The notes: generated from the sequence alone by a model not told the origin. A stretch of DNA of 64,000 bases from Trichoplax adhaerens (GCF_000150275.1 NW_002060944.1:6930245-6994244), one strand, 5' to 3'. Shown: positions 20,816 through 64,000, numbered from the stretch's first letter. Translations and numbers: made by a program.

Positions 20816-20903
20816 CTACAGTACTGTACTGTAGTACTGTACTGTAGGGATCATTTAAACTACTGTACAGTCTCTGTACTGTACTGTACTGTACTATACT
20901 GTA
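20816..20903. repeat. (TACTG/CAGTA)n pentamer-rich tract in the GFER/EIF3B divergent spacer
   Basis: Runs such as gtactgtactgtagtactgtactgta and tgtactgtactgtactgtactatactgta, followed by CACGTG at about 20909. Confidence 0.75.
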
Positions 20904-31824: not shown

Positions 31825-32210
31825 TACTGTATGGCACGGTACAGTACGGTACGGTACGGTACGATTTCCACGACTACAGTACAACTCAGTACTGTACAGT
31901 AATGTACTGTACAGTCTGTATGTTTGTACACATTCAATACTTGTTGTGCAATATTAAACTTGCTACAAATCGATAAAGACACACAAAACGCTGAGACAAT
32001 GTACAATACTAAATACTGTGAGGCACGGTTCAGTACGGTACGATACGGTACGATTTCCACGACTACAGTACAACTCAGTACTGTACTGTAATGTACTGTA
32101 CAGTCTGTATGTTTGTACACATTCAACACTTGTTGTGCAATACTAAACTTGCTACAAATCGACAAAAGACGCACAAAGACCAGAGACAATGTACAATACT
32201 AAGTACTGTA
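31825..32210. repeat. About 190-bp direct duplication rich in GTACG/ACAGT pentamers, immediately upstream of GPS1
   Basis: ggcacggt.cagtacggtac...cgatttccacgactacagtacaactcagtactgtac...aaacttgctacaaatcga...gagacaatgtacaatactaa occurs at about 31833 and about 32022. Confidence 0.9.
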
Positions 32211-40956: not shown

Positions 40957-42595
40957 TTTTATCCAATATTTTCTATGCTAAGGATTCAATATTACAGTAT
41001 CTTCTGGTCACGTTATTCAACTTGAATGCTGATAGAACTGAATACAAACTTGTTATAAATTTTGGCATTAGATAGAAGTTGAATTCGCAGTAATGGCTAA
41101 GTCGATGGATAACCTATGCCATAGTTTCCAATCCTTGATGAGAAGGCAGCAACAGACTGATCTCGATTTTACTGTACGTCTGCAGAACCTTTGAACAGGA
41201 ACAGAATTGAAAGTGACTGCATTGACGTAGAAATTGAATACGCTTTACTATCAACGCGTACGCTTACCTTAGTAGGCCAATAGACTATAAGTACAGTACA
41301 GATTGTCTTTCTGTCTGTTACATCAAAAGTTGAAAGTGGCCGCCATAAACTTGAGCGATCTATATACAGTATAGGGGTTTTTGGAGCTTCTACGATGAAG
41401 TAATACACTTGCTATAGTAGTGCTACTGTGCAGTAAGTAGTGTGCGAGATGCATGTATTCAAAAATATCATATGTACTTCTCTCAAACATAAAAAAAAGC
41501 CCTAGAGGCTAGGGCTGTAGCAGAGACTTTTCACATTTTCGAAGTCGCAGACTGAAGGGACCGCCAGAGACTGTATCCGCAAGCAGAAATTTTGATAAGC
41601 TTTACTATGAAGTGGTGCTCTTGTCCTAGTAGCGTTACTGTACAACGTATGCAGTTCGTTGTGTGCAAAATGAGCTGTCACACAACTGAGTTTCGTTCTT
41701 ATTCGATAGCCAGAAAGAAGGTGACATCATTTTCACTTACCATGGTGTAGATGAACATCTCTCCAAGTTCAAAAAATTACTGCTACAAATAACGACAAAA
41801 TCAGGTCCCATAACCATCAACTTCAGTATATTTAGGTATGTCAGCATGCAGGATTGGAAATGGCTTTCATAGACAGTACAGTAGGTGGAAATTTTGACAC
41901 TATTAACCATGCATTCATACTCGTGTTAACAGTCCTTTCAAGACTACGAGCAGCGTGCAAAATTTATATCATCAAATTTAAACAAAAAGTGTATAAAATC
42001 CCCAAAATAGGGTGACCAATTATTTGCACGGTGGGTATACTACAGACCGTAGGACATACGGATATCAAAATATTGCAATCTCATTAGAATACGCCATTGC
42101 TAATGATGTCTACTGCTTAGGATTAAATTCTGTTAAAGCTCAAGCAATTACTACTGCAAATAATGACAAAAGTCAGTTTCTATAATCATCAACTTTATGT
42201 CATTGCAATACTGTCCATGTTTATGATTTGATTGTGGTGATTTCATTGTAGATTATTGCCCGAAGATGAATACTAATTAACCTCAACGAGCAGCAGTGCA
42301 AGTCTTGGAAGAACAAAGGTATACGCTTATCATGTATAATTAATTATATCAACGACGTAATGTTATGTAATCTTCGCCAAGTTAATCATACCCAGGATTG
42401 AAGTATAACTATTACTGTTTCCTATGCAAGCTATATGCTATCAATAACTTTATTATAGGCTTGATGACTGTATCGATTGAGAATAAATAAAGATTGACTA
42501 CAATATATGGCAAGCAATTGTAGAGATCCTCTTAATTTTGACTGACGTAAAGGTTGATGATTGATTCATTCTAGGTTAAAAATTATTACGCGATA

Positions 42596-45355
42596 ATGTA
42601 CCTTAGAATCGATACCGAAAGCAAAGAAACATTAATATTATCGCGTTATCCAAGCACGAGATCATGGATGGTATCATTCTGTAAGTATAGAATAGTCTAG
42701 AATGGTTCTGCTAATGTGGAAATGCAAAATGGCGATACGTATATAATCAATATGTCTTCCCCTATTCTTCTTCTACAATACAGTACTGTATGTTATTTTT
42801 ACACGTATACTTAGCAATTGTTCTAAGATTGATCGACAGTATAGACTGTATAGTATGCCAGTAAAATAGGATAAATATCATTCTATCTCAAGCTATCATG
42901 TAATTTTATGCTAACAAAAGTCAGCACATCTCCTCTTCTATAGTACCTGTACACTGCAGAATTGATCGTAAATGCTTACCGACATCATGTTACACCAGTA
43001 AGATGGAAAATTTCATTCTCTCTTTTAGCTTTCGTATTTAGTTAATTTTATCATGAATAAACGTTTGCATATTTCCTCTCCGATATTGCTTATCACTTTA
43101 TATTAGAAACTGTCTTAAAGGTCAATCAGTTATATCACATCAGTAAAATGGGAAAACATCATTCTATCTTCTGCCTAACTAATGCAGTTTGCAAATGCTG
43201 TGTAAAAATAGCAACGCACACTTACAGTACACGAAATAGAACGTCAATGACAACATAGGTGGATATTAGAAGAATCAGTTGAAAGTAAAACACACCATAT
43301 ATATTGCTTGCGCCTTGCAATTACAGTCCACCGTAAGGCTTGTCTGCAGTATTGTAGAATGGGCTATATATGATATCAACTACCAGAGTTCCGCAAATAG
43401 GAAAATTTTGATGCTTGTTAGTTCTCGGGCGGGTTGTCAAGTAGCGTGATCCTTTTGTAAAACTCTATCTACTACATAACAGGTTGAATGCCTTACTAAT
43501 TATTCTTAATATTTCACAGTTATCGCACTATTTGGATTATTCATCAGTTACTACAGCTCAGGTTAGTCCATAATAATAGCTCCGTTAGATATTATCAATT
43601 TTTCTGTTTCATTACTAGCATTGGAATCGCTTCTTTATCGATTCCATGTAGCTGTATCATGATTAAATCGTATTATTTAACCTACTGGACTAATTTTCTA
43701 TTTACTCTATCTCAATGCTAGATGGATCATACTTGAAATTAACCTATACGATTACTTTTGTGATAATTGCACTAATGTACTTAGACTATTGGGAGGTAAG
43801 AACAGCATACTTACGCTATAAATAAGTAAAAAGAATAACGAATGTACTCAAGTATGATTTAAAGGGATAGGAGACAAACTCTTTTGAAAATGTAGTACCG
43901 TTATCCTTATCTAACAACTTTTTATTTTCGTAACGTTCGTTGTAATGTCGAAATGTACTTTACACTGTACCAAAATTCTAGTGGATAGCCTGATATTATA
44001 GTGACATAGACTTAGCTTGGCACAAAATCAATTGAGTTAGAAAATTGTATACTGGTCATTACGTATGTACGGTAGATACTACAATAGTATTTGGTTGTGT
44101 TACTTGAGGTTCTTAATAAATCTTGTCAAAACGAATTCAAAATCATGTTTTATATTTGGCCTAATTAAAACTCTTTTTCTTATTTTTATCAATTATGCGC
44201 GTATATTCAATAGCAATGCGTTTTTGATAAACATGGATGTGGAACTATCACGTTAAAGAGCCAAAGCCTAATGCAAAGATTATTTAATTTACCGTATGCT
44301 CGATATAGTAAGTATTGCCTTATATCGGTGTCATAAATTCATATAAAATCTATATGGACTAGATTTATATTCTGAAAATTCCATAATATTGATCTTTTGT
44401 GTGTTTGTCGGTTTTATGAAGGAACATACTTGATAATTCTTATGATGTACATTATCTATGATATAGTCTAATAGATTAGCTAAAATATTTAAGTACACTT
44501 AGAAACAATGTATTAAGTTTAACAAAGTATCTAAGAGTAATCAGCTTTGATACTGTCTACTTAGTAGTTCTTTGTCTTTATATAATACTTCATTTAGATT
44601 ATTAGTCTATATACACTAAAACGTATTAGTACATTCGTAGTACGTTCTTTGGCTATTTGTGAAGTTACTCTTATTATGAGTACTCTTGTTAGGATATAGT
44701 AATTAGTGTTGGATTTGATCGCCATTGCGATGTTGTAATATAAGGAGCCTTAACCGTGGAAATGGTAACGTGTAGATATATAGAAGGCTATATTTAATAT
44801 CAATCTCTTTATGTACATGTATAGTTATTGCAAATATAAGTGAAATTCAAGAAGTTACAGTCGAACACGATAATGTGCGATACTTTGGAATGAGCCATCA
44901 AGTGAGTAATTAATCATTTAAAAAATCTTATTACCGTATATCTTTTATGCTGTTCTGTTATTATGATTCTGCTGTATCTACTAGATCCGATTACTATATT
45001 AGCTTTATATAAATGTGCTCTATATAGATTGAACTAGTTATCAAAATGGCTACGAGACAATACTTTTACCACTATTACAAGAAATTTTATAGTCTTGACT
45101 TTTTGATACAGTTTCCTATATTTTTTTTCAGGTAATGTTACATTTCAGCCCGGGATATAGCTTGCCTTTAACCAATAACAGTACATTTGGAGATTGCAGG
45201 TAATGAAATATTACAGCTTAGTCATGCTATTTAATTACTGATTAATTATAGAATGAATCGATTGAATGATTTTTATTTTGACTTTCTTCTGCAGCAAACA
45301 TTATAAAATCGCTGAGAAAATATCTGAGTTTCTCCAGATAAAGTGCGAACTTTAA
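42596..45355 (+). CDS. CYBC1: Cytochrome b-245 chaperone 1 (EROS / C17orf62) homolog (multi-exon; not recovered by the ORF track)
   Basis: Exons give MYLRIDTESKETLILSRYPSTRSW / IALFGLFISYYSS / LKLTY...LDYWE / QCVFDK...TITLKSQSL / VTVEHDNVRYFG / GYSLPLTNNSTFG / KIAEKISEFL...CEL*. This is colinear with human EROS as recalled (MYLQVETRTSSRLHLKRAPGIRSW...EDWEEAIFDK...VEEEKVRYFG...GFSHPLTQ...AIAKLITSFL). Confidence 0.88.
42855..43175. repeat. About 140-bp degenerate tandem repeat x3 in CYBC1 intron 1
   Basis: cagtaa(a/g)at(a/g)g.aaa..tcattct.tct occurs near 42859, 42996 and 43141. Confidence 0.55.
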
Positions 45356-47258
45356 TTACGTTACCCTTACGATATTCTGTCATCTACTATATTTGAATTT
45401 CTTCCGTCGTCGGTCTAAATCTAACAACGGCTAAAGTAGTTACGCTTATTTATTAGTCCTACTGTAGCTTACATACTAATATGATGTGCGTACTGTACTG
45501 TAAGCCGAATATTATTTATTTCTATCGTAGCGACATGGCGACACTAATATTTAAAATTGGAGAAGCTTAATTGTATTTATGTATTTATAGATTAGACGTA
45601 TGGCTTTGAGTGTTGTCTAGCAACGTCTGAATGATAGTGTCTCTCGTTAGCATCCCGAACATATCTATGAATATAATTTACGTAAATGCTCTCGTATGGA
45701 GGGAAAGATGCCTTACTTTTATCGGTACACTTTTAAGTTGACTATACTTTATTCAATGTTACTGAGAAATAGATCGACCAGACATTTGCTCCTTATATCA
45801 TTGCTAAAGTTATAAATAAGTTTGCCGATATCAGAAAATGTCAATGTAAATTAACCCTGCTCGAAACAAGAAATTTTTTGATCGGTATTATTTACATAAG
45901 TGCATATTTTTATTAACTAAAGGCTAAGAGTCATTAATTCGAAATAGGCTTTAGAAGGCATATACCTACGATGTACATTTGTACAATGGTACCGTAATCA
46001 AAATGAATGATATACTTGCATCTTGTATCAAATATAATGTGATAGTTATTAACTGTACTGATCATATTGTTTCAAATTTTTTGACTGTAGATCAATGTAC
46101 TGTACTGTCTTCTTAACGTACAGTATATACGAGTATATATATATGTATTATAGTGTGATTCATTATCTGTGCTTACTTCCTGAAATTAATAAAGAATGTA
46201 GCTGTATTTCTAGCCATACGATGAAACGAGTACTTTAGCAAAATTTTTGAAAGACATTTTGCCACCAATGTATCCCATAATTATCATAATTTCAAAGAAT
46301 ATAATTTAGATTCTGACAAAATGAAATCATTTGCTAGCATCACAATATTGACAATACTGACTTAAATAAGTTCTTAAGGTGCTTTTGATTGCAGTATGTT
46401 TCATATACACTGTACTATATACATACAGTACACTACCGTTGCCATTCGTACGCAAAGAAAAATCATAAACAATAACGTCAGACTATTACATCAAGCTCTA
46501 ATGATTGAAATTCTTTATTACAATGAAGATGTTATATACATTGATAAGAATACAGTACAAATAATCTAATATCACACGCTGAAAAGTAATTACTGTATTT
46601 AACAAGGGTAAAACAAGGCAGTTGCATGTTATAGACCACAAAACATGAATTTGGTATTGATGTCTAGCTAAACCTTAATAAGAAATGAAGTAAATAATAC
46701 TGCACTGACAAAACAGTGAAGCGCTATATAGCACTTAAAAGTACTATATGATTGATTTATACGTAAAAGTATTTGATCAAAAGTCTATAGTTAAGAGGAA
46801 AATCTTACATATATAAATAAAACGTCAATCTGATTTATAAACTACAGTAAGCTGAGATGGATACGATACAAAAGATCATCATTTTTAGTTATTGAATGGA
46901 TTAGGGTCACAATACATTTTATAATAATGATGATTCTGCCCATAGTTATAAGTGCCAATTATTAATATTTAGGTGTTTCTTTGAATGATTATACAGCTGG
47001 GCTCACTGTGCATAATGATTAATTACTTAAACTCAAATTTTCGATAAAATCCACAGGGATCAAATTGTACATGATTTTTATATACATCCACTTCATAACG
47101 ACTGCAATTTACTCTCAATGATGCTAAAGCTACAAATGTTCCTTGGGAATTGTAGTTAAATTCAAAAATTAGCGATTGGTACTATATAAGATTGCTCCAT
47201 GATCGCGTCATAATACATGTCCAGAAAAAATCCAAATTGGTGGCTGTGTAAGACTGTA

Positions 47259-50200
47259 TTAATAGGGTGCATAGCGGTAACCCGAAGATGAATTATTATT
47301 CCTGTAATTAGCACCCTAAAAATTAAGCTGATTGTAAGTCTCCAAGCAACTACAATTTAGGAATTGAAATCAATTATTGATAAAAATCTTACATGATGGT
47401 ATGATGATGGATTATAATGATCTCCATAATTTTCATAATAATGTTGATCAGAGGCCCCGGGCCTATGTCCTCTAAAATCTCCGTAATCATTAACATCCCG
47501 ACCATATCTAAATTAGAAATTTAGGGATAAAATAAAAATATTTGTAAATCAAATTGGAGCAAGTGCAATAACTGTAAAAAATTTTACGATTCCTGCGATC
47601 TAAATATTTACAATGTAGCAACTGCACTGTGACCAGACATCTACTTACCCGTAAGACTGATAATGGGGATTATATTCGTACATATGAGATGGGTATGGTT
47701 GTTCATAAGGTGGCATCATCTACAGCAACAATTCATACGATTTATGAATATAATTAAGAAAAAGTTTAAAATAATATTTGCATTCACTTGTCTCACATTT
47801 GAATTGTATGAGGGTGGCGCACGACCATGCTGCTCTCTGTAGGAATCGTAGCCACCGCGTCCTCCTGTCCAACGTCTACCACCACCTCTGCCTGTAAATG
47901 GCAAAATTAAAGCGTTCATTTTAGTAACGCACAATCTTTGATAATTCAGGGTGTAATTTAGAAATTATCTCATTCATAGAAGTCATGTAGCATAAATAAA
48001 ATATATTTAAAACTTGACTACCTCCACGTCCACGCGGTGCATTGAAAGCTTTAGGAGTCGCATAATTTACCTGTAAATGTATTCAATTTCATAACTAAGT
48101 AAAGCGTAACCAACAAGCTAATATTATGATATCGCCATTACAGTATATATCTAAAGTATCTTACAAGTTAGTATACTACTTTTCTTTTTATGATAAATTA
48201 ACTGAGGTATCCCCATTTACGTCACTTCAAGCCTTTACCTCCAATATTCTGCCGTCCACGGATTTACCGTGTATATCCTCTTTAGCACCTTTAGCATCTT
48301 CCGGGTTGATAAATGTTACAAAACCAAATCCCTATACGGGAACAAGCAAAGTCAATAAATCACTTTGCTAATTAATACATTCAGTCATTACTTATAATGC
48401 TAACAACCATTATCGCTGGAGGCTACCTCAAGCTAGCTTTGAGTAAATCAATAATTAAGTTCTAACAAAGAATTATGATACGGTTAAGCAGCTACATGGG
48501 TATGAACGATTTGGAGGTAGATTTTCACATTTTAAATGAATAGTTATACTGTTCTATACACCGGACTACGCTCAAACTACAATTCTATCAAATGTCGCTC
48601 CCTTAAATCTAGAATAGCAAAATAGTGCACTAAAGTTCCATAAAATACTATCCGTGAAGATAACATCCTATCCATTCATTGTGCCTTTACTCACTTTCGA
48701 TCCTCTTTCATTAAAAATAATTTCTACGTCTTCAATGTTACCAAATCGCTGAAAGTGTAAATGCATCAATAATTACCATTACAGTATAGTCTGATTATCT
48801 TTAAAAATTATTCCATGAGCCATCAGTTTCTTTTAACTAGATATTGCATTAATTTTGTATCAATTGCTAATTAGATGATAACATGACTCCTGTATTATCA
48901 TTACGTCAGTTCTAGACTTTTGTGACCACTGCTAATTTAAAAGACTAAGGTGACTCCTGCACTATCACTTTGTAAATAATTTAGTTTAGATTAAATCGAT
49001 CAGTAGTTGCAAGATTAAACTCAATTCATGTTATCATTGCGTCAATTCTAGAGGAACTAGTTTAGACGCAAAATTGTGTAGTTCTGCTAAATTATCGCTA
49101 ATGCACTGAGATAATAGTTAATGCTTGCTACACTACGAAAATATCCAACTAACCTCAAACATATTTCGTAAATCTCCATCACGATATCGAAATGGAATAT
49201 TGCTAACATGTAACCTTCTGTGATTCGAGGCATCATCATCCTTTGCTGGCCATTTTCCTTGTTTGGGTGCTTGTGATTGATAAGAATCATGGGGCTTATC
49301 CCATTGCTGCTCTTGATACGTGTATCCAGCCTGATCATTGTGAGGTTCTTGATGGCTGTGATTCCAGTTTGTCTCTGTTGGTGATTTCTATTCATGAATT
49401 GGTATAATTGTACGAAGAAATCAAATAAGACATTACTGTAAGAATTGCGGATTACAATCAAAAATTAATCGAAATTAGAACAGAAAAAAATCTTGTTATG
49501 ATACTGTTGTTATAATATCTTATTAATTATGACTTTCGTATTGACATAAAAGTTAACTAGCATGTAGCAGTAAGTGCCATAATTCTAACTTTGTGATGTT
49601 GAAATAATTGAATGGAAATAAACATAGTAATTCAATATCCTTTACAGGCACCATCGTGTCCATAGGCACAGTGAAACGTAGCCATCACTTCCAATTAAAG
49701 ACAACTTGATCTATTTTTTAGTTAGATGTACCCGTATGCCATGAAAATTTTGATCCCTTTATTCGTTACGAAGGGAAATTGATAAAAACTGTGTTTCATT
49801 GCAGTACATCGTGTTATGAAATCCATTAGTTACACCATCTACATATTTTGCCGGTCGTTACATTGTACAGTGTGTATTCGTATCTATCTAACCCTCTATC
49901 GCCTCAAAGCTTACTTTATCATCATATTTTCGACAGAAATATGATAAAACAAGTATTATTCCATTTAAGGAAGACATTATAAACCCAATTACAGTTTTGT
50001 TGATTTTACCTATAACACCACGGCTAATTGATAAAGGATTCGATGATCTGTTACATTGTCACTTTATGTTATATCACACTGCAGTATCTGCAAGTGTTCA
50101 GTTAAAAGGATGGATATTTTGGCGTTGATTACAGTCAAAGATGAGCATTTCACCAAGGAAAACCTCTCTTCTCTTTATTACCAGGTACTATAGTTTGTTC

Positions 50201-52417
50201 GAAATTTACGATGATCTATACTTTCAATCAAAACTGTATTCTATCTAGTAGAAGTATCGCTAACTATAAATTACACCCCAGTTTAAGGCGTTATCAGAGT
50301 ATTAGTATAAAGAATATCGCAATTTTATCGGCAGCTTATATTCAATGAGGGTATAAATCCTCTACACATACAGAAAATGGGATTGAACAGACTATACATC
50401 TTGCTAATTATTGTAAAACTGACTACTCTATAAATCTCCCGTCCCAATGCAATTCTACATTGACCAGTCAGTATTATCTACCACGATAACGCTGTGTCAT
50501 TTTGGGGGAGTATTCTTATTCCGGTAGTAGTCTACCACTACATCATATCTCGCGTCTTCTAGTAAGTAGCAATAAGAAGTATACGTGTATGTAGATGTAA
50601 TCGAATAGATTGAATAAGTACAAGTAGTTCAAATTTCAATTTCAGATATGGCATTATTCCATGCATCTAAAAATGAGATTGACTTTCTGGAAAGATAGAT
50701 GTACTTGATGTCTCATAAACTGATCATGAAACTACATGAGAGATTCAAGAAATGTTGTAGAATTATTATATTTAAACTAGTAGTCTAGAAAAGCAAGAAT
50801 GTCAAGTTTCAAGGGTTAATGTTATCCACTAGAACTCTTGTTCTAACTGCAGGTCGATCAAGTCGTATGTTGTGTAGGAGTAAAATGCTCATCAACTGAG
50901 TTATAAAGACTTTAAGCTCATTATGGAAGTGGTGGACAAAATTTCTTCCATAACGTTATTATCATAAAAGTATAAGGTAAGAGGGTTGATCTCCTTGTCT
51001 CGCTGGATCTACATATTCTTCAATTAGTGTAATGTCATACTAAAATCATCTCAATATGGCTATACTATATAGAATTGGTTGATCCCTGCCTTACTAGTCG
51101 ACGTTGTCATTGAATAAATGTGATCGGAATGACGTTTACTTAAGTAAAATGTGCTAGGTTAGAGGGTTTATGTCTCTCTTTTCTCCTATCCTATCCAAAT
51201 CATCTGATGATCGCATAGACTCATTGATCTCGATTCTACTACGTGCATGCATTCCGTATTTTCATAGAGTAGATGGGAAGATGTACCTCGTCTTGATTTT
51301 AATGAAAACATACAAAGTTAAAGGATATCGTTATGGGTTACTCTTGATCTCCTCTTTGAACGATGTGTCTTTTTTTTTTTTACCATCTGAGTCAATGTGA
51401 TCCAGCGCTAACGTCTATCAAATCGATTACAGCAGGGAAATTATCTCAAGGTGATTACGACACGTTGATCGTTTTTGTGCTACCGGATATGTGATGCAAG
51501 ATCGATTGGTGAATAGACAGTACTGTGATGGGTATAATATTGATTTTAGCCTTGCAAAGAGGACAATATAGTCCATGATACGATTGATCATGGTGGGGTA
51601 TTTTCTATTTAGCTGTACTGAAAAGAATAAAATGATGATGATGGTAGCATCCAATGTTGAACATGGTTTTACTAGGGATAATGTGATTGAATGATTTTGC
51701 CATCGTGTTGATGGGATCTTGAAGTGGTAGCATCATCAACCAATGGAGAAGGAGAATGATGTTGAAATGTTAAGTAAAGATTACTTGTCTCCATCATGAC
51801 AATGATGGAGATTTAGCATTGAAATCAAGTTGATTAGCCTACCATGATATTGATTAATTAATAATTGTACTGTTGGAATAGAGAGACATGTCAATGATGT
51901 TATTGTGCAGTGATGACGATGATACTTGAAGTTGATTCTGATGTTGAACTGTAGAGTAAAGATTACTTGTCTCCATCATGGTGATGATGAAGATTTAGCA
52001 TGGAAATAAAGTTGATTAACCTACCATGATATGATTGATTAATGAATAATTGTAGCGTTGGATAAAGATAGAGGTCAATGATGTTATTGAGCAATGATGA
52101 CGATGATGCTTGAACTTTATTCTACTGATTGGTGTAGCTTTAGGCTAGATTGTCAACTATTCCATCAAACACAATAGTGATGGAGTGTTGGCGTTGCTTA
52201 CCGCATTGTCCGATTGTGCCCCCATTTGAGATGATTCTTCTTGATTGATTTGATCTACGTTATCGCTCCCTTCTTCAAGATTAGAAGAGGAATTGATGAC
52301 AGATACAATCTTTTTAGTCGTTAACGAATCGGGAAGGGATGCTCGTTCACTGGGTAAGTCTCCATCGAGCCCAGGGATAACTGAAATTCTGCTCTCAGCT
52401 GTTGGAACTGACGACAT
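47259..52417 (-). CDS. RBFOX: RNA-binding protein Fox-1 homolog (multi-exon)
   Basis: RRM RLHVSNIPFRYRDGDLRNMFE/RFGNIEDVEIIFNERGSK/GFGFVTF...VDGRILE/VNYAT, an RG/Y-rich tail and C-terminal RYAPY*. The proposed first exon 52417-52202 (216 nt, GCG|gtaagc) is phase-0 compatible with the exon starting about 49387; the first exon is less certain. Confidence 0.93.
51770..52125. repeat. About 180-bp direct duplication in RBFOX intron 1
   Basis: gtaaagattacttgtctccatcatg...gatttagcat.gaaat.aagttgatta.cctaccatgatat...gtcaatgatgttattg occurs at about 51774 and about 51956. Confidence 0.85.
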
Positions 52418-52789
52418 GTTGATCAGCGGATTCGTCGCGATGGATGTTGGATGTATCACGTGAAGGCGAGTTGGACAGCTCCTTTGTACAGTGGATGGAT
52501 GGATCACGTGGCCTTTCTACAGTGCCCAAGCATTCACGCGGTCTACAGTACTTTTCATTGTCTCCTTTTCTTTCCTGGCTACAGTACTGTTCTGGACACA
52601 GGTACAGTACCACTGTCCAGGAGTACTGTCGGTCCGAAGATTACAAACAGTAAAATCAGCAGACTAGATACAGTAAGTAGACATACAATATAGAATACTG
52701 TATGAAATAATGACGAATCTGAATGAAACGATGGACGGAGAGGCGACTGTAAATTCATACTACTGTACTGTCATTCCTTTCCTTTCATG

Positions 52790-54535
52790 AATACAGTTGT
52801 ATTCCCCTACTATCAACTCATTTTTTGGACCTCGATGGTGTCCGTCTGTACGTACACTATCGTCTTTCAACAATGTCATGATGGGATAACCTGTCCCATG
52901 TGTCCATTGTCCGTCCATCCATGTGCCAATCCAACTCGGAGTTTCCTTCGAGTTGTTCTGGACGCCGATTAGCTGTAGTCAGGTCTAGCTGTAGTCCTTG
53001 AGTGTACAATACAGTACGCTGTACAGTGTGTAGAATTGCTTTCAGATGAATCACTGCATATTTTGATGGCTTACTGTACAGTATTTTATTGGAAAACCCG
53101 TCAAAAACTGTGTACTGTATAGGTTATCCAGTTTTGCCTCGATTGCATCCATCTGTCCGTATACTGTCGTGTTCAATCAATGTCATGATGGGACAACCTG
53201 TCTTAGTATGTGTCCATTGTCCATCAATGTCGCAATCTAACTCGCGGTTTCCTTTGAGTTGTTCTGGACGCCCTGAGTATACAGTACACTGTACAGTGTG
53301 TAGAATTGCTTTCAGATGAATCACTGCATATTTTGATGGCTTACTGTACAGCATTTTATTGGAAAACCCGTCAAAAACTGTGTACTGTATAGGTTATCCA
53401 GTTTTGCCTCGATTGCATCCATCTGTCCGTATACTGTCGTGTTCAATCAATGTCATGATGGGACAACCTGTCTTAGTATGTGTCCATTGTCCATCAATGT
53501 CGCAATCTAACTCGCGGTTTCCTTTGAGTTGTTCTGGACGCCCTGAGTATACAGTACACTGTACAGTGTGTAGAATTGCTTTCAGATGAATCACTGCATA
53601 TTTTGATGGCTTACTGTACAGTATTTTATTGGAAAACCCGTCAAAAACTGTGTACTGTATAGGTTATCCAGTTTTGCCTCGATTGCATCCATCTGTCCGT
53701 ATACTGTCGTGTTCAATCAATGTCATGATGGGACAACCTGTCTTAGTATGTGTCCATTGTCCATCAATGTCGCAATCTAACTCGCGGTTTCCTTTGAGTT
53801 GTTCTGGACGCCCTGAGTATACAGTACACTGTACAGTGTGTAGAATTGCTTTCAGATGAATCACTGCATATTTTGATGGCTTACTGTACAGCATTTTATT
53901 GGAAAACCCGTCAAAAACTGTGTACTGTATAGGTTATCCAGTTTTGCCTCGATTGCATCCATCTGTCCGTATACTGTCGTGTTCAATCAATGTCATGATG
54001 GGACAACCTGTCTTAGTATGTGTCCATTGTCCATCAATGTCGCAATCTAACTCGCGGTTTCCTTTGAGTTGTTCTGGACGCCCTGAGTATACAGTACACT
54101 GTACAGTGTGTAGAATTTCTTTCTGATGAATCACTGCATATTTTGATGGCTTACTGTACAGTATTTCATTGGAAAACCCGTCAAAAACTGTATACTGTAC
54201 ACCATGTGTTATCCAGTTTTGCCTCGATTGCATCCATCTGTCCGTCTACTGTCGTGTTTCAAATCACTTTCAATCAATGTCATGATGGCACAACCTGTCC
54301 CATATGTCCAACTGTCCATTGTCCATCAATGGAGCAATCCAACTCGCGCTTTCCTTTGAGTTGTTCTGGACGCCGATTGGCTGTAGTCCCTGAGTGTACA
54401 GTACTGTACAGTCTACAGTCTACAGTGTGTAGAATTTCTTTCACACAGTACTGTCAATCAGTGCATATTCTTATGGCTTACTCTTGAGAAAACGCGTAAA
54501 ATAAAATTAAAATTTTATAGGTGTTATCCAGTTTA
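52790..54535. repeat. 270-bp tandem array: about 4 near-identical central units plus diverged terminal units (about 6 copies)
   Basis: Identical 76-aa pseudo-ORFs at 53089, 53359 and 53629, and a near-identical one at 53899, give an exact 270-bp period. Diverged copies lie at about 52800-53030 and about 54180-54480. Confidence 0.97.
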
Positions 54536-55069
54536 GATCGTATGATTTGTTTTTTAAAATCTGCATTAAAAATTTCTATACCCTGTACTGTACTAGACAG
54601 TACTATAAAGTACGACGTGATCCCATACTGTACATTCGATTTGACAATTTTTGCTGCAATTTGTACAAAGGGATTGCCAATGCACAGTTTGAATATGTAC
54701 GGATTGCTCTTGACTTAGCAGGTAACCTTCTATAATGACAATCAGAGACCTACCTATTGATCTTTTTGAAGCGTTTTACTATTCAAACATATCCAAGAAA
54801 ACGCATTACATACTAGTAGTACAGTACTCTACTCTACTATATTACTCTTTGAATAATCGCATGAAATTTAAGGTGCAGACTCCTAGAATAATGTATCATC
54901 GTTTAAGCTATTTACGCTGAGTATCTGAGGAATCGGGGTTATTATGGCTGGGCCTACTGTACAGTCTTGCTACAGTACAGTACTGTACTGTACTGTACTG
55001 TCACCACCTCGCCACTTTCCCTACAGTAGGCCTCGACTGCACTGGCACTCCATCAGGTGCAACATCAAC

Positions 55070-55501
55070 ATGGAAGTTGTTGCTATCAAAGAACCTCAAG
55101 ATATCATCAAATGCTTTGATGCTTATAAAGAACTTCGACCACACTTAGTAGATGCAGAATCATTTGTTAATCAAGTTATCCAACAACAGAAAGAAGGCTA
55201 TACCATAGGTGCCATTTTCGATCAAGACGATCCCAATGCAGCCGCTGCGGTCATTGGTTATCGTGATATGACCACTCTTGCATGGGGAAAATGTATTTAT
55301 ATTGATGATTTATCAACGCGTTCTGTTCATCGTCAGAAAGGCTATGGCAGTACACTACTTCAACATGTAAACAAATTAGCCAAACACCAAGGCTATGCCA
55401 TGCTTCACCTCGATACTGGATACACACGCCATGACGCTCATCGTGTCTATTTACGCAACGGCTTCCAATTTTCTTATCATCATCTTAGCTTGCAATATTA
55501 A
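55070..55501 (+). CDS. GNAT-family N-acetyltransferase of bacterial type, no intron in the CDS (143 aa from ATG 55070)
   Basis: Uninterrupted ORF with ELRPHL, LAWGKCIYIDDLST, the acetyl-CoA motif HRQKGYGSTLL and LHLDTGYTRHDAHRVYLRNGF. The ORF-track extension from 54944 runs through a pentamer repeat and is probably non-coding. ATTAAA lies at about 55586. Confidence 0.9.
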   Translation: MEVVAIKEPQDIIKCFDAYKELRPHLVDAESFVNQVIQQQKEGYTIGAIFDQDDPNAAAAVIGYRDMTTLAWGKCIYIDDLSTRSVHRQKGYGSTLLQHVNKLAKHQGYAMLHLDTGYTRHDAHRVYLRNGFQFSYHHLSLQY

Positions 55502-56657
55502 CAGTGACAATTCCGCCTCACTAGCTCCATCCATTTCAATAGGATGACAGTAATGCTATACTGAATAATGACAGTCTAGCATACCATTAAAAGAAAATAC
55601 AATTATGGTAATAGCAATATTCATCCACTATTTATCACCATCATAAGATATTGTAAATCTTAATCTTAATAGTAATCGTCGAAAACTTTCAAAATTGTAC
55701 ACTCTTTCATGAAAAATGACGGATTGACTAGAATTATAGTAAGAATGCGCATGCACGAACTCAAGTTCGATAGGGCCCTTGCTGTCAGAGCAACAAGTAG
55801 AGCTCTCTATTGCTGAGACTGCTGCCAATGATGGATGCACAGTATAATCAGTTCAATTAAAGTAATCTTATTAATTAATCCTCATCGACTGTACGCACGT
55901 ATTACAAATTTCATCGATATGCTATACTTACTGTACCATCCATCTACGTTAGCAGTGAAATCATTGCTATAATGCATACTGAGCACGAAAATAGGTAGAG
56001 AGTATGCAATAATAAAAATATGTTCTAAACGCATCTTCTGATTCAACTTCAACTCTACCTATTTAATCACGCTGGATATTTCGACATAGTGGTATCAGTG
56101 AAAGTTTATTGAACTGTAATGAAATATAGTATCCAGATCTGTTTTAATAAAGGCTTTATACAATATTGCAATCTGTGGTGATTACCATATTAAATTATTA
56201 TTCTTCAAAATATCTATAATGCATCAGCACAGAGGAAAAAGCACCTGTTTTTCTCTTTTACCTCTACGTGCGTGAGTTTGGGTTATCTATCTTTCTGTTT
56301 ATCTAGAGAGTATCATTACCCTACTGTATAGACATGATTAATTAAACAACATTTTATACATACCATAGCTTTATCCACTTAACATCATATTAAGTATTCA
56401 TTCTACAAATTAGCAATATACAAGCAGTGACACAATTCCATATAGCAAAGATGTAAAAGTTAAAGTAGCTTTAAAAGAATAAAAAGTACAGTACAATAAT
56501 AGCATTATTGCAGTTTCAGAGCTCAAAATTAGAATACCATTTTTTATAAAATTTGCAAAAATCAATTAGACAAATAGATGAAATATAAATAAATTTATAG
56601 TGATCTTTTAGAGACATTTAAATAGCATATGATCAAAATCGATTATAATTATGCCCT

Positions 56658-59600
56658 TTATAATTCTCGTTTTGCTGCAGAACGTATTTGATACTCAGCG
56701 ATGAAGAATGTTATAACACCGACGACACCTACAGCAGCCTAGAATATTTTTTAATATCAGTTATAAGTAATCACATCAAGAAAGGCAAACTGGATCCAAT
56801 AAGTAATAGAATATAGCTTGAAAATATGTATAGTAATTAAAAACAGAGATTAAGATACTTACAATAATTATCGTCAGAAGATGTAAAGTTGTTGATAGGC
56901 TCAATAAAAAGAATCCAGCTATTGATAACGATTGTATGAAGGTAAAGACTTCAAACACTAGTGGGCTATTCGATTCAAAAATTTCTCCAAGAATGGAATA
57001 GATCTAAATGCAATAGCAGTAGTAAAAATCTTAAGTAGAACTTCATAGAAGGGTATATCAGGCAAAGAGATTAGATATGCGTGTATACTGGCATACAGTA
57101 TATGTAAACTAATATACGGAATTAATCACAAATCGAAAATCTTGCACTGTATCGGCAATGTAGTACGAGTATTTTACCATCGTACTTTACCTGAGAATAA
57201 AAACAGCTATCACCTAATCCCAAAAAGAAGGCACAGGTAGCAGCCATTAAAAAACTACGCAATTTAGTCAAAGGAAAAGAAAAATAGACAGATGTCAGGG
57301 TTAATAAATACCGTATTTAATGAGATCAAGATTACAGGACTTAAAAAAGTGTATAGCAAAAGAAGTAAAGATTAACTAACGATAATTATAATTCAAGTAT
57401 ACCTAGGTTTTCCCCAGAATGCATTTTCATAAGTTTCCATGAACGGTGATTTAAAGGGCACATTAAAGTATATAAATGCATATGAAAAAAGATGAAAAAG
57501 GAGACCAATGCATATTATGGAGATGCGCCCACATAGCTTCTTCTCTCCAGCGATACCAAACAGACTCCCACCTGTGAATAACATATAAATATATATTCTC
57601 AATACAATGATCACAGTGTGACTAAGGTATTCCATTACGTTTAGAAAAACCATCAACCAGTATTTCTACTCTTATAATTACATTGCCTAAATATGCATAA
57701 GTTATAACAGGGATAATTGTACACACGTATAATAAGTATCTTGCATACACACGTTAACAGTATAAAGAAAAACACTAGGTATGAAAAGCTACAAATCACA
57801 CGAGCAATTTCTCTTACCAATAATTTCTCCTATCCCTAAAATGATACCCGCTATGCCAATAAATTCATCTGGGTTCGCAAACAGCTTGGTATTACCTAGA
57901 GGGTAAGGGTTTTCATATTTTATTAATCTTGTGAAGTATATTAATCACAGTTAGCTGTTCCATATTGAGTAAATATTCAGTTCAAATATAATTTTTATTC
58001 ATTCTATAATACCAACCAATGCACGTCATGTATGTAGTACTGTAGAAACCAAATGCAAAGCCTAAATTAAAAAATAAAGAAATGAATTGAAACAAATGCT
58101 ATTACGTAATTCAGTACTTTGATTCCTTGTCCAATGACAAAATTTAAAATCTTACTAATTATAATAATTCTTATTTAATGATTATTAGAAATTACATGAT
58201 TGTAAATAATCCCACACATAATTAATAGATTTGATTAACATGGATAACTCTAAAAGACTTCTATTGTAGACTAGTTCGTTGAAATAAAGCCAATATTCAA
58301 TTGTTTCATATTACATGCCCACTTGCTCATCAACACTAACCTGTATAAACAAATATAAAAACCAACCAAACAGCGTTCGAGTTGAAGAAAGTCTTCATAC
58401 TTAGGTCTACGCAGATTTGACAAGAAGATAACAATAAAGATCTCATTTACTATTTTGAATTATTTATCTGCTTCTTAGTTGATTATGTAAATGAAAATAA
58501 AAAATCATTTCTATACTGTATTAAAGTAAATATAAACATTCTTACGGAATAATTTAAAGGGATTAAGAATTTTATCCGATAGTGTTTCGGTCCTATAATT
58601 ATAATCATTAAGGATATGATAAATTTATAGTTAGCTTACATAACATTCTATGCATTAACATATAATATTGTGCAGTTAAGTACGTATGCTACGACTTTGG
58701 ACAATACAAAATTGAAAAATAAAATTACTCATCGTCTCCCTTAAGTTGTGCTCTCTGTGTTGTCCGACATAAGAAAAAAGAAGAAAATTATATTGAAGGT
58801 TATCCCAGTATTAATTTAATTTAAAACGAAGCTTATCTTCATAGTAAGCTTAAATTACAAGTGAACCTAATATGTGACTAATTTACCTCATCACCCTTTG
58901 ATTTCTCTATAAATTTAGTCGGGAAAATAAATAGAAGTAAAACTGAACCGACGCCACATGCCACTGCTAAGACAATATACAGTAATATTCGTTGATTTTG
59001 ACCTAGATAATAATGATAAGTCCTCAATAAATTTTTTACAAATAAGTTAATACAGTGTCTATATTAGCATGAAGTATAACTTTAATCGAATGCAAAAAGT
59101 TAAAAAAGAACCAGACCTATTGCCTTGGTACCACTTAGTATCCACACCAAGAATACGTTACCCAATAAACGACTGAAATAGATGGAATATAAAATTAAGA
59201 TTAAACGGTAACAAAGAAATTAAACTTTACATCTCTATTCTTACTTGTTTTTTACACAGAGGAAGATTTATTAGTGTCTAACAGTAATTATTTTTTTTAT
59301 GATTGAAATATTTGTAATGTACCTAAATTGCATACAACCCCAAAAGATACGACCATCCCTTTTCGAATGCTTGGTATCAGTACTGGATATCACAATATTA
59401 GCTTGAGCTGTCCAAAGTACTACAAAATAGAAAAGATCCAAGGTGGTTTACACAATGACAGATTTATTCCTTTCACTAAGTATTGATGAAGGTACTCTCA
59501 GTAGTAAAATGATGTTTACCATAATGCATAGTCAAAAACTCATAAATTACAGTACACCAAATCTTAACAAATGCTAATAAATATGCTTGTATAGTTTATA

Positions 59601-60564
59601 TTGTGTACGTTGTATTCCATCAGGAAAAAGATGTTATTGTCTTACGTAAATAATTTATTAGAAAGAATAATTCATAAGATTTACAATAATAAAATCATCA
59701 AACGTGTTCGTCAAATTAAGGTAAACTATAGTCATTGAAAATCAAATCTGTTTGTAAATATATTGAGATAAAAGATGCACGTGAACCCTACCTCCACCGG
59801 CAAGTCCAGTGAGTGCGGCTGCAATATAGATAGTTTCAATGAACGGGTAGATAAACGAGACCATGTAAAAACTAACACGCGAATATAAATATACAAACAA
59901 GAAATATAATAAACTCGATAGAACACTTTAATCTATTAATGTTAATCACTCATTAGTGACTCATATTCGATGTTGTTTTCATCTATGTCAGAATTATTAA
60001 GTTGCCACTACACTGAAAAATTTTTAGATAGAGTAATATTTTATTTCATTTCATACTAAACTAGTAGTTATGAGATATAAAGCACTTTACAGCATTATTT
60101 TGCTTATGAAATCATATCAAATTACTGTATATACTGTACGGTAGACAAGAGAAGAAAGTACTACTGGACTTTCATGCGAACTTTACACTGCTTATTAAAG
60201 AAAATATAAGTGATACTGGATGAGAATTATTTTATGTTTTTCAATATCTGTATGTGAATAGTAGTACTTAAAGTGTAGCTAGTTCGAATTCTGATCAATG
60301 ACTACCTCTACCTCTACACAATAACCTTGTCGATATCACTATTTACACTTCGATTTAACAACTAACAAGCTCTCTTAGAATTATCGTTTTATATGTATAT
60401 CAAATTTTACGTTATGCAAGATATTGAATTCGATAGCCTTGGCTCTTAACTCACCAATAGCAAGCTCCAGCAATTAGACAACTTAATTTAATACCAAGAA
60501 AATCCGTAATAATTGGTCCAAACCACTTGGATATTGCGAATATTCCGTATAAAATTGCTAAACT
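56658..60564 (-). CDS. MFSD11: UNC93-like major facilitator protein MFSD11 (multi-exon; 5'-most exons unresolved, upstream toward the assembly gap)
   Basis: SLAILYGIFAISKWFGP, VLWTAQAN...GRIFWG, YMTCIG, FIGIAGIILGIGEIIGGSLFG, CAFFLGLGDSCFYSQ and FTFIQSL, ending AAKREL*. Confidence 0.88.
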
Positions 60565-61377
60565 GTAATGGCGCAGGAGAAAAAAAACGATTTACATTTT
60601 TATCTCAAATGTACTGGCTTAGTGTATCATATTATCTTTCTTGCTAATGAAAATAACTATATAATACTAATCTACAATCATTAAATGACATTAAATCATC
60701 GCATAAATGTCAGACTAATGTTGTAATGAGATAGTAATGCTTTACAATATTTTTTATAAAAGTATTCTATAACATAAGTAAATAGTATAAGAACTGATGG
60801 ATAGGCTATCGGTAACTTGTCGGTAGTGTTTTATACTGATCCGTATAAGGAAAATTTTGAAGTTTTAATTCTAACTTTGTAGTAATGCCGTAGTAACGTT
60901 TAATTAAAAACTGCGTTTACCTACAATAACTATATGATATCATCAAAAGAAGAAGTAGAAGGCTATTGAATATAATATAGTTGAAATGAATGGATAATTA
61001 AATAATCTTAATTTATTGCTAGTAAATATAAAATAATAATCGCTCTTGGTCTATAGTGATTAACGTTAATGTTAATAAATCGTTCGATAAAATCCTCGAT
61101 ATAAGAACAGCTACCTTAACTTATCTTCTAAAATAATTACTATCATGCATGTATCAGAAAGCTCTGGATTGGGGCGGCCAATTAGTAGTTAGCTTACAAA
61201 TAAATCAGATCATATCAGTAATTCTTACATCGGATAGAATTACTCGTGCATTTATTAAAGTATAACTTCAGCTGTTTAATAGTACGGTGGTAATTATTCT
61301 TTGAATGTTATTTTGAATGAGAAAATTAAAATTCGTAGTAATGGGCAAAGTACTATAAAAGAAAAATTTAGCCATAT

Positions 61378-61427
61378 NNNNNNNNNNNNNNNNNNNNNNN
61401 NNNNNNNNNNNNNNNNNNNNNNNNNNN
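61378..61427. other. Assembly gap (50 N)
   Basis: Run of n characters. Confidence 0.99.
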
Positions 61428-61695
61428 ATTGTGCTTAAGTTATAGAAGGCATAATTCATATATGTTTATTACGTAGTCTTGCTTTCTTCTCCCCTTCTAC
61501 CTGTTTTATGGTCATTGCAATCCAAAACCATGACCTTCTTGGACTATTTTAACCCATAGCTCCAAACAATGATAGTGTTGATTGTGCTTGAGTTATAGAA
61601 TTTATATGTATTTTTTATGTAGTCATGCTTCTTCTCCGCTTCTACCTACTTACCTCGTTCTACCTGTTTTATATTCATTGCAATCCAAAACGGCT
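61428..61695. repeat. About 150-bp degenerate duplication abutting the gap
   Basis: attgtgctt(a/g)agttatagaa...ctacctgttttat..tcattgcaatccaaaac occurs at 61428 and about 61581. Confidence 0.75.
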
Positions 61696-62080
61696 AGCAC
61701 CATTTTAAGCCAGTGCTCCCTCCATCCATGATATTATTGATGATTATGCTTCACTTTTCCACCCCACTATTAAATTTTTTTCGTCTTTGCCCTTTTAAAA
61801 TCGCACTGTTACTTACATGGTTGCTTTTAGAATGGATTAATCCATCCTATCGATGTTGTATGCATGGACTAATGGAAGAAAAGAGGCAAAAGATTTTCTT
61901 CCATAAGTCCATGATGTTGATTCTCCATATTGGAAAGTTTCAGTACTGAAAATAGGCAAGAGTATAGTGTATGTATAATGACTTGTAGTATAGTCTCTAT
62001 GACCAGTCAAGTGTGAGCAAGCACATTTTTGGCTGTGAACGCGCCTTCAATACGACTACTCAAACAGTACTCTTACAATA

Positions 62081-62099
62081 CGATTGGCTAGATGGCGCT
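62081..62099. promoter_or_regulatory. Reverse CCAAT box plus YY1-like motif (cgattggctagatggcgct) upstream of KCTD
   Basis: Motif match only, about 250 bp upstream of the ATG. Confidence 0.3.
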
Positions 62100-62339
62100 C
62101 GGTCATGATCCCGGTTACTATGTTCTACTATAGGCAAGTTGAAAAATAAATCGATAACCCAACACCAACTACCCTAACCCATCTACCACTCAACAACAAG
62201 TAGAATTCGTATGAGAACGAAAGGAACAACAAACAAGGCGATGGAGGCAGCGCCTTCTTGATCAAATCCAGACATTGAATGAAGGCCTCAGTAGGCAACA
62301 AGACTGCCAGCATCCGCCAACTTTTTCAACTTGTTGTTG

Positions 62340-62510
62340 ATGATGGCATCGAGAAATAGCCATGATGGCAATCGACGAGATCTATCCAGTTGGGTCAAAT
62401 TGAATGTAGGTGGGCAATATTTCCTCACCACCAGGATGACACTGTGTAAAGATGAAAATTCTTTCTTATGCCGTTTATGTAATAACGATCCTGATCTTCC
62501 ATCGGATAAA
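62340..62510 (+). CDS. KCTD5: First coding exon of a KCTD2/5/17-family BTB/POZ protein (continues beyond the window)
   Basis: [40 protein letters not shown] followed by a gtaagt donor. Likely a single pro-ortholog of KCTD2/5/17. Confidence 0.92.
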
Positions 62511-62694
62511 GTAAGTCCAACACCATTTAGTTCATCCACTGCATGCAGTGTGTAAATTGATGGAGGGGCAATGGATGCCATGTATAGGATAGATGTTAGC
62601 CAATTGGATCATTTTATGTTCTTGTTATGCTTACCCTTTATCAACCCCTTCATTGGATGATGTTTCCATTCAGCTTTACAAGTCATTTATAGGG

Positions 62695-62722
62695 TAGAGA
62701 GAGAGAGAGAGAGAGAGAGAGA
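62695..62722. repeat. (GA)n microsatellite
   Basis: About 13 AG units read directly; a shorter run lies at about 62806-62820. Confidence 0.95.
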
Positions 62723-64000
62723 ATCAACATCTGTCCCATGGGTTGAGTCGACGACAAGCGATGGAAATGCTGCAAAAGCCAAATTACTGTAGATACTGTA
62801 CGAGAGGAGAGAGAGAGAGATCAATTAAAATTGTTGTTGTACGACAGGCAAAATCCCATCGATTTGATGGTAGCATTGCTTACTTTCTCTGCCTTTCATC
62901 CAATAGTCATCATCATTCAATAGAGACAAGATATTCGTTTGTAAAATTGACTTTCTTGCAACGACCGTAAAACCCTCTTGCCTATGTTGTCATGGCTAGA
63001 ACATGGCTACAACTGGACTTGTCTTGCTTCTTTTAGCCAGTGATTGAAGGCGAAAAATAATGTAAAATGATGTCCATGATACAAAATGGAGGATGATGCA
63101 TTCAATAGTCGACTCTTATCCATTACATTCGATCTCTTCTTCATCTTTTTTTATGATGTATTATTTTGCTTGTGCTACTCATAGAAATAGAGACAAGCGA
63201 TCGTTGACAACATGGAGTTAGAAGAGTAGAAGAAAATTCCACTTTATCCATCATATGATCATCATGTCAAGAAATGATTGCACTTTTTTTTCCAACTCCT
63301 TGTTATCCATCGTGTATCCAAGCACAGGACAATAAAAGGAATACAATTTAATCATTCCTAGATACAGTAGGTCCATAACTTGATTGCCACCATGTCTATC
63401 CAATGTTCCTAAAAGCAGACCTGAAGAAATAACCGATGCTCAACTTAAAACGATATCTGTGGCACTGGAGAAGAAATAGACAATAAATGACCATTCGACA
63501 CAATTTCTACATCATATTTAGAATTGGCTAGAAAAAGATAAAATACGTGGACCTAAAATAGTCGTCAATAATCCTAGTGAGCCACACTATGATGATCGTC
63601 AATCATTCTAGGACTGCAATAGGTAGCATTCAAAGTATTCAACTCCTTCTTCTATCTTTTCCGATCATCTAATGTAAATAGATTAGGGGAAAAAATAAAA
63701 GTCATCATTTAATAATATTATTATTATCATCATCATCAATATACTGTTATCCATCTTCAATTGCTACTGGTGATGAAAGCCCAAATTTCCATCCATTCTA
63801 GGGAGAAAACCATGACCTCCTCTATCCCCATCTTCCCTAGTGCTAAACAGACACGACGAACCGCTAGCGATATTCGAAAGTATTGAAACTGCCTATCCAT
63901 CCATCTTGAGAAGATGAATCAACCAATAGATACTAATTTACAATGGAATATTTTCGTATTCCAAGTCCATTAATTTACGTGCTGACTGTTCTTTCATTTA

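Follow-up and report, generated by a model that had tools for sequence, protein, structure and literature searches.

To our knowledge, functional and well-supported gene transfers from bacteria to animals are uncommon, and they are often disputed as contamination. In Trichoplax adhaerens, gene models were previously screened for bacterial-like coding sequences (CDS) by Driscoll et al. (2013, Genome Biol Evol 5:621, PMC3641634), who reported 12 such CDS on large eukaryote-dominated scaffolds and called them 'clearly bacterial in origin'. Two of the 12, GNAT_1 and GNAT_2, were described in that account as intronless, as not rickettsial and as having phylogenies with much LGT among bacteria, and intronless candidates were considered there to be likely recent transfers. 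The bacterial origin of two T. adhaerens GNATs is therefore already in print (PMC3641634), and in this respect the finding reported below is essentially known. GNAT_1 and GNAT_2 are most probably the paralogues that we term a and b, because exactly two members of the subfamily exist in the genome, both are annotated and both lie on multi-megabase scaffolds. Their description and ours have in common the species, the number of GNATs, the lack of introns, the large scaffolds and the bacterial affinity; however, where the 2013 account favoured recent transfer, our results place both the transfer and the duplication before a deep placozoan split and point to purifying selection since. We found no later paper that names these two GNAT genes.

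The closest relatives by sequence are small bacterial GNATs marked by ELRPHL and RHDAHRxYL, which resemble the placozoan copies in length (139-160 aa), in identity (40-61%) and in their invariant residues. Unlike these bacterial genes, the placozoan copies lie on a eukaryotic chromosome between host-type flanks and form a long-stemmed clade of their own. The bacterial members are annotated as 'GNAT family N-acetyltransferase' alone, and the copies of Trichoplax sp. H2 as 'putative N-acetyltransferase YhdJ'; no characterised member of the subfamily was found, so it offers no substrate.

Several characterised GNATs that act on small molecules, namely the 1,3-diaminopropane enzyme DpA (8a9n/8a9o), PA4026 (2eui), AAC(3)-I, the streptothricin acetyltransferases, PhnO and yeast Hpa2, share the minimal fold (TM 0.65-0.78) and the CoA loop, but their local sequence matches to the placozoan protein are weak and fall over motifs A and B. 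Structural alignment gives 13-21% identity, and the protein encoded in our window stands outside all of these families. Given this low identity and the family scores below cut-off, the substrates of the characterised enzymes are not transferable. Animal GNATs (SSAT, AANAT-like enzymes, NAA50/NatC catalytic subunits and thialysine acetyltransferase) likewise belong to the superfamily and share its fold, but their sequences do not match significantly, and the best eukaryotic PDB entry is marginal at an E of about 0.006. The AANAT family is a separate, broadly eukaryotic GNAT family. In Trichoplax it has four paralogues, for which a role in amine detoxification has been proposed (PMC2897805).

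Results

An intact single-exon GNAT gene

The window, i.e. the whole stretch of DNA analysed here, comprises 64 kb of a T. adhaerens assembly of 105.6 Mb in 1414 contigs (C1413:6930245-6994244); its features are collected in Table 1. An earlier note on this stretch had described an intact, intron-less CDS encoding a GNAT, and translation of the single-exon ORF indeed gave 143 aa with no internal stop. It is one of five open frames of at least 130 codons in the six frames of the window, where GC is 33% and long open frames are scarce. The identical protein is recorded in NCBI, UniRef and EukProt, on a scaffold of 9.74 Mb.

Table 1. Positions, in window coordinates, of the GNAT gene, its motifs and the features around it.
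Feature	Position	Strand	Basis
Multi-exon RRM (RBFOX-like) host gene upstream of GNAT, in divergent orientation	47264..52427	-	Projected from H2 gene call with RRM_1
Tandem array (~270/540 bp) between RBFOX-like gene and GNAT	52790-54535		
ACAGT/ACTGT microsatellite-like tract, candidate host promoter-region element	~54955-55002		70-115 nt before ATG
Single-exon CDS, 143-aa GNAT N-acetyltransferase, placozoan paralogue a	55070..55501, stop included	+	ORF (ATG 55070, TAA 55499-55501), PF00583, AF2 model, H2 orthologue
R88-Q-K-G91-Y-G93, GNAT motif A loop R/Q-x-x-G-x-G/A	55331..55348	+	G91 invariant, R88 at least 90% conserved (26-sequence alignment)
R120-H-D-A-H-R-V-Y127, family signature, helix 4, GNAT motif B	55427..55450	+	R120, H121, A123, H124, R125 and Y127 invariant
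ATTAAA, candidate polyadenylation signal	55586-55591	+	85 nt 3' of stop; same offset in H2
Multi-exon UNC-93/MFS (MFSD11-like) host gene downstream of GNAT, in convergent orientation	56659..63234	-	Projected from H2 gene call
N run (assembly gap) within MFSD11-like gene	about 61300-61400		X in translated frames 61271-61465

The assignment to the GNAT superfamily, also made in the earlier note, was borne out by Pfam, in which residues 40-132 matched PF00583 (Acetyltransf_1) with 48.9 bits (cut-off 20.7, E 9.6e-13); PF13508 (Acetyltransf_7) reached 34.5 bits (cut-off 27). An AF2 model built on the family alignment (pLDDT 94.2, pTM 0.88) has the mixed alpha/beta GNAT fold, and a Foldseek search of the PDB with this model returned at least 500 matches, of which the top 50 listed are GNATs (probability 1.0, TM up to 0.78). 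In GNATs, the motif A loop R/Q-x-x-G-x-G/A binds the pyrophosphate of CoA, and such a loop is present here. Together, the Pfam scores, the loop and the modelled fold predict that the protein is an acetyltransferase of the GNAT superfamily.

The conservation of individual residues was assessed in an alignment of 26 family sequences. Twenty residues are invariant in this alignment (L22, R23, H25, G73, Y77, D79, D80, G91, L96, L97, L114 and D115, followed by R120, H121, A123, H124, R125, Y127, L128 and H138), and the window protein keeps all of them. The subfamily signature (E21 L22 R23 P24 H25; Y77 D79 D80; L114 D115; R120 H121 A123 H124 R125 Y127) is complete as well, and the strings that the earlier note had quoted as a signature (ELRPHL, AWGK.IYIDDL, HLDTGY and RHDAHR.YL) are all present and correspond to invariant or near-invariant columns of the family. 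The GNAT gene is host-like in its GC (0.40) and GC3 (0.29); since its closest bacterial homologues are likewise low in GC, base composition is uninformative as a signal of transfer.

The gene lies on a host chromosome

The GNAT gene is located 6.9 Mb into a 9.7-Mb scaffold and is flanked on both sides by AT-rich, non-coding DNA of the host that carries host repeats. Its orthologue in Trichoplax sp. H2 (RDD37496.1, 99% identity) is found in an independent assembly (NOWV01000238.1) in the gene order Cybc1 / RRM (-) / GNAT (+) / MFS-UNC93 (-), and window positions 44318-61375 are colinear with H2 at 98-99%, with a sole break in the array at ~53.0-54.4 kb. A location between RBFOX and MFSD11, as given in the earlier note, agrees with the H2 gene calls, which carry RRM_1 on the upstream side and MFS_1 plus UNC-93 on the downstream side, and with the exons of the window itself. 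When the flanking exons were scanned against Pfam one by one and unspliced, the minus-strand frames 60454-60591, 57396-57665 and 56779-57003 matched UNC-93 (PF05978) at positions 12-48, 241-293 and 321-372, respectively. On the upstream side, the minus-strand frame 49136-49387 contains what we take to be the start of an RBFOX-like RRM (RLHVSNIPFRYRDGDLRNMF); Pfam gave no score on this RRM-like fragment.

The tandem array upstream of GNAT differs in copy number between the window genome and Trichoplax sp. H2, in which a 566-bp stretch (L003 8735-9300) matches three successive array positions of the window at 88-91%. Megablast colinearity with H2 stops at 61375, at the N run in the MFSD11-like gene.

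A third source of the locus is contig L092 from a marine-biofilm metagenome (SAMN08714533; Zhang et al. 2019, PMC6355793), which carries a GNAT orthologue with 77% nucleotide identity. This orthologue lies between matches to an RBFOX-side exon (window 52195-52433, 76%) and to an MFSD11 exon (window 56849-57013, 80%), and a value of 77% against 76-80% means that GNAT has diverged at the same pace as its host neighbours. The RBFOX-side exon, GNAT and the MFSD11 exon accordingly appear in one order in three sources, i.e., the window genome (H1), the H2 contig and the wild L092 contig, and the look at the syntenic site in related species that the earlier note had proposed found GNAT in place in both Trichoplax sp. 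H2 and L092.

These results bear on the explanation that contamination or a chimeric join brought the ORF of a symbiont or food bacterium into the scaffold. Trichoplax assemblies contain symbiont and contaminant DNA, as reported in PMC3641634, and an ORF that has no intron and whose closest outside relatives are bacterial would fit such an origin. However, occupation of one site in two independent assemblies as well as in a divergent wild placozoan, the position deep within a large scaffold, the non-coding host flanks with their repeats and a divergence that matches that of the neighbouring genes leave contamination effectively refuted, at a probability that we consider negligible. The GNAT locus is genuine host chromosome.

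Two placozoan paralogues, their age and selection

When the whole T. adhaerens genome was searched in six frames, exactly two copies of this GNAT were found. The second, paralogue b, is TRIADDRAFT_52547 (C1414:10505431-10505853), with 67% identity to a. Both copies have an open frame without CDS introns in a genome that is otherwise intron-rich, and both are annotated; their scaffolds measure 9.7 and 13.3 Mb.

Public data held five additional placozoan-type sequences (P0002, P0003, P0087, P0004 and P0006), of which P0006 adjoins a eukaryotic MBTP1_N exon and comes from the same metagenome sample as L092; copies of both a and b are present in this sample. Two contigs from it, L088 and L092 (ENA ERZ23499115, SAMN08714533), are true placozoan nuclear contigs within a bacterial-biofilm metagenome. 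Both GNAT paralogues are found on them, as are exons of the RBFOX and MFSD11 sides and the MBTP1_N exon, and the placozoan lineage behind them is ~20-25% divergent from Trichoplax.

In a careful maximum-likelihood tree (IQ-TREE, 68 rows, LG+C20+F+G4 PMSF, unrooted), nine placozoan GNATs form one clade (100/100). This clade divides into sub-clade a (95/90), with the window gene, its H2 orthologue, P0002, P0003 and P0087, and sub-clade b (99/96), with TRIADDRAFT_52547, the H2 copy of b, P0004 and P0006. A quick tree of 163 rows gave a matching picture. Because each sub-clade holds Trichoplax together with divergent placozoans, the tree points to one acquisition, followed by duplication before these lineages split.

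The dN/dS ratios (Nei-Gojobori) were 0.075-0.087 for a and 0.069 for b, in comparisons whose dS of 1.6-1.9 is near saturation, and they indicate strong purifying selection on both copies. H1 and H2 differ in their GNAT genes at one non-synonymous site and at no other, and the ORFs are unbroken in every placozoan source. It is thus extremely improbable that a gene truly transferred from bacteria has since become a neutral, unexpressed and non-functional relic, since both paralogues show ratios of 0.07-0.09 at saturated synonymous divergence, with intact ORFs throughout and with every invariant family residue retained.

Bacterial relatives and the question of the donor

A search with the pattern RH[DA]AHR[LVA]YL, checked by tblastn, found 278 loci in species-representative bacterial genomes of more than 10 phyla, including Pseudomonadota, Bacteroidota, Chlamydiota, Actinomycetota, Chloroflexota, Verrucomicrobiota, Acidobacteriota, Bdellovibrionota, Thermodesulfobacteriota and Omnitrophota. 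The best of these loci were from Alphaproteobacteria MAGs (53-54%) and a Gammaproteobacteria MAG (52%). The closest bacterial-type relatives of the placozoan GNAT show 52-61% identity, and the relatives in the subfamily as a whole are full-length and colinear (coverage 91-100%, 37-61% identity). A profile search with a threshold of E<=1e-10 returned at least 5764 proteins; in the top 120 of them, most of which carry no label, the only eukaryote labels were those of Trichoplax, and no other eukaryote-labelled protein was present among 84 hits with sparse taxon labels. Atlas neighbour clusters of the GNAT were 93-100% Bacteria, and two near relatives (P0008 and P0091) were located in compact bacterial gene arrays. 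Judged from these matches, every relative outside Placozoa that could be placed appears to be bacterial.

Furthermore, a homologue with 54% identity (P0012) was located on a bacterial ICE (L085 1-12447, Logan SRR10256730) beside genes for an integrase, a MobA/TraI relaxase, TraD, SSB, Fic, TIR and three other GNATs; the same element has aminoglycoside-phosphotransferase-like (APH) and EcKL kinase-like genes. Members were also found in 70 plasmid records, 25 of them Leptospira plasmids (47% identity), such as Laicp of Leptospira interrogans (L099, NC_025151.1), where the gene lies at 2992-3438 in a toxin-antitoxin-rich region. The presence of members on an ICE and on 70 plasmids shows that the subfamily is mobile in prokaryotes.

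In the unrooted 68-row tree, the placozoan clade falls within a group of 41 rows that includes MAG proteins of alpha- and gammaproteobacteria (93/86), and bacterial groups outside it are supported at 92/82 and 90/77. The nodes that nest placozoans among bacteria thus reach 93/86 and lower, which is good but not maximal. The earlier note had suggested a maximum-likelihood tree as a check, and this tree, which places the placozoan sequences amid bacterial ones, agrees with its reading. Transfer from bacteria to a placozoan ancestor is by far the simplest reading of this pattern, and the opposite direction, from animal to bacteria, is disfavoured because the family spans more than 10 bacterial phyla.

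The alternative without any transfer is vertical inheritance, in which an ancient GNAT subfamily of bacteria and early eukaryotes was kept in placozoans and was lost, or has gone unsampled, elsewhere. The sparse taxon labels in our searches and the long placozoan stem branch (0.65) leave some room for it, as does P0007, a 146-aa subfamily member with 55% identity (L084 625-1065; GCA_040384225.1, JAWVHC010139552.1). The contig of P0007 is possibly eukaryote-like: it is 1.6 kb long, bears no dense array of bacterial ORFs and terminates in a 36-bp tandem repeat, in an assembly of more than 139,000 contigs. P0007 falls among bacterial sequences, and its union with the placozoans was not rejected by an AU test (p=0.395). 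Either a second acquisition by a eukaryote or contamination could account for it. Against vertical inheritance, the placozoan clade is several nodes deep among bacterial sequences, its identity of 52-61% is to particular proteobacterial MAG and metagenome proteins, eukaryote labels other than Trichoplax are missing from the 84 hits as well as from the top 120 of at least 5764 proteins, and eukaryotic solved structures match marginally at best. In addition, both copies are without CDS introns in an intron-rich genome, and massive parallel loss would be needed. We therefore regard vertical inheritance as very unlikely.

With regard to the donor, the immediate sister node of the placozoan clade has a support of 55/0 and is a polytomy, so no donor is named. 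A donor among the intracellular symbionts of placozoans (rickettsial or Margulisbacteria-like), with a gene that now serves symbiont maintenance, would be in line with the Alphaproteobacteria MAGs among the nearest named relatives, with the subfamily members of Chlamydiae, which are also intracellular, and with the symbiont-maintenance role on which PMC3641634 speculated. Nevertheless, the same paper states that GNAT_1 and GNAT_2 are not rickettsial, no Rickettsiales or Margulisbacteria titles occur among the best 80 of the 278 loci, and in an old transfer the present symbionts need not be the donors. With the sister relation a polytomy, we consider a symbiont donor unlikely, if somewhat less so than vertical inheritance.

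Sequence elements around the open reading frame

The in-frame ATG at 54944, which would give a 185-aa ORF, was rejected as the start codon because a 5-bp microsatellite indel separates H1 and H2 between 54944 and 55070 and because the N-termini of bacterial homologues align at M1, i.e. at 55070. This indel corresponds to one 5-bp unit of the ACAGT tract that precedes GNAT. The earlier note had called the tract host-style, a fair label in view of the 14 exact occurrences of ACAGTACAGT in the window, spread over several sites, where 0.12 are expected; CTACAGTA is present 25 times against 2 expected. The ACAGT/ACTGT tracts form a handful of clusters, some of them within higher-GC 1-kb bins, at 20816-20958, 32063-32089, 41873-41882, 45460-45501, 46099-46108, 52543-52771 and 54955-55028. 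Related motifs are also found within 400 bp 5' of the GNAT paralogue and of divergent placozoan copies. The tracts may mark placozoan promoter regions.

Downstream of the ORF, the ATTAAA that the earlier note had pointed out is in place (Table 1). This element and the ACAGT tract on the other side are the sole candidate signals for expression of the gene. An exact look-up of the window protein for transcripts in public assemblies gave no match, and the Logan contigs L090, L091 and L093 are uninformative on splicing and poly(A) because they either run colinear with genomic DNA or derive from a library of unknown type.

Enzyme class and candidate substrates

The protein reached the NCBIfam cut-off of none of the named GNAT families AAC(3)-I, AAC(6'), STAT/Sat, PhnO, RimI and WecD. 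Scores were 17-31 bits against cut-offs of 86-420, the best being those for PhnO (31.3 vs 142), STAT (30.5 vs 420) and AAC(3)-I (23.3 vs 200), and PDB sequence matches had E values of 1e-4 or weaker. Together with the marginal match to the best eukaryotic structure, these low scores agree with the description in the earlier note of a protein of bacterial type rather than of the animal NAT or SSAT families.

Three routes to a substrate were tried, and none allowed an assignment. The fold neighbours, which include PA4026, the diaminopropane acetyltransferase DpA, AAC(3)-I, glyphosate acetyltransferase and Hpa2, are generic Foldseek matches at 13-21% identity. Sequence gave NCBIfam scores below threshold and PDB matches at E of at least 1e-4. 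Finally, the bacterial gene contexts disagree, with proB and a glyoxalase at one place, an ICE with APH at another and a toxin-antitoxin-rich Leptospira plasmid at a third.

We also considered a toxin of the TacT/AtaT type and rejected it, as no antitoxin neighbour recurs at 20 loci and the TacT fold match ranks 41st. Across 40 flanking ORFs of these 20 diverse bacterial loci, Pfam found no shared neighbour family, other GNATs recurring twice, and this lack of a conserved bacterial neighbour argues against a toxin-antitoxin GNAT. On the Leptospira plasmid Laicp, an annotated 'antitoxin' lies 330 bp upstream amid many toxin-antitoxin genes and forms no clear pair with the GNAT. A modifying or detoxifying enzyme would fit, since the gene is stand-alone, mobile and accessory in bacteria. 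Our guess is that it neutralises an amine-bearing bacterial or algal metabolite met during biofilm grazing.

By analogy with GNAT enzymology, the R-x-x-G-x-G loop would bind acetyl-CoA, and the acetyl group would be passed to a primary amine of a small molecule. Y127 is likely to serve as the general acid in this transfer.

Discussion

The evidence very probably describes a functional nuclear gene of T. adhaerens that derives from a small bacterial GNAT, acquired once by a placozoan ancestor through horizontal transfer and then duplicated. Host integration, age, selection, the GNAT fold and motifs and the bacterial affinity are established here. The earlier note had spoken of a domesticated bacterial gene, and this reading gains from the synteny in three placozoan sources, from the fully supported placozoan clade nested among bacteria and from the low dN/dS ratios. 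The transfer would have taken place a single time, before Trichoplax and one or more deeply divergent placozoan lineages parted. Duplication would then have given copy a, which lies between an RBFOX-like and an MFSD11-like gene, and copy b (TRIADDRAFT_52547), on another scaffold, and both would have remained single-exon genes, held by strong purifying selection.

Relative to the 2013 account, our results add that the transfer is old and not recent, that the duplication is retained in divergent placozoans, that the syntenic site is conserved, that strong purifying selection acts on both copies, and that the prokaryotic subfamily is mobile, on an ICE and on plasmids. The gene offers a clean example of the textbook type because it stands up to tests of physical linkage, phylogeny and selection and predates a deep placozoan split. 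Moreover, biofilm metagenomes are an unexploited source of wild placozoan sequence.

A more far-reaching possibility, which we put forward tentatively and hold to be rather doubtful, is that the two genes form an ancient, phylum-wide detoxification module domesticated from bacteria. A single transfer before the living placozoans radiated would have been followed by duplication and sub-functionalisation, and the enzymes would inactivate amine-bearing bacterial antimetabolites or control symbiont metabolites. If true, such a module would serve a biofilm grazer that has neither a gut nor known adaptive defences.
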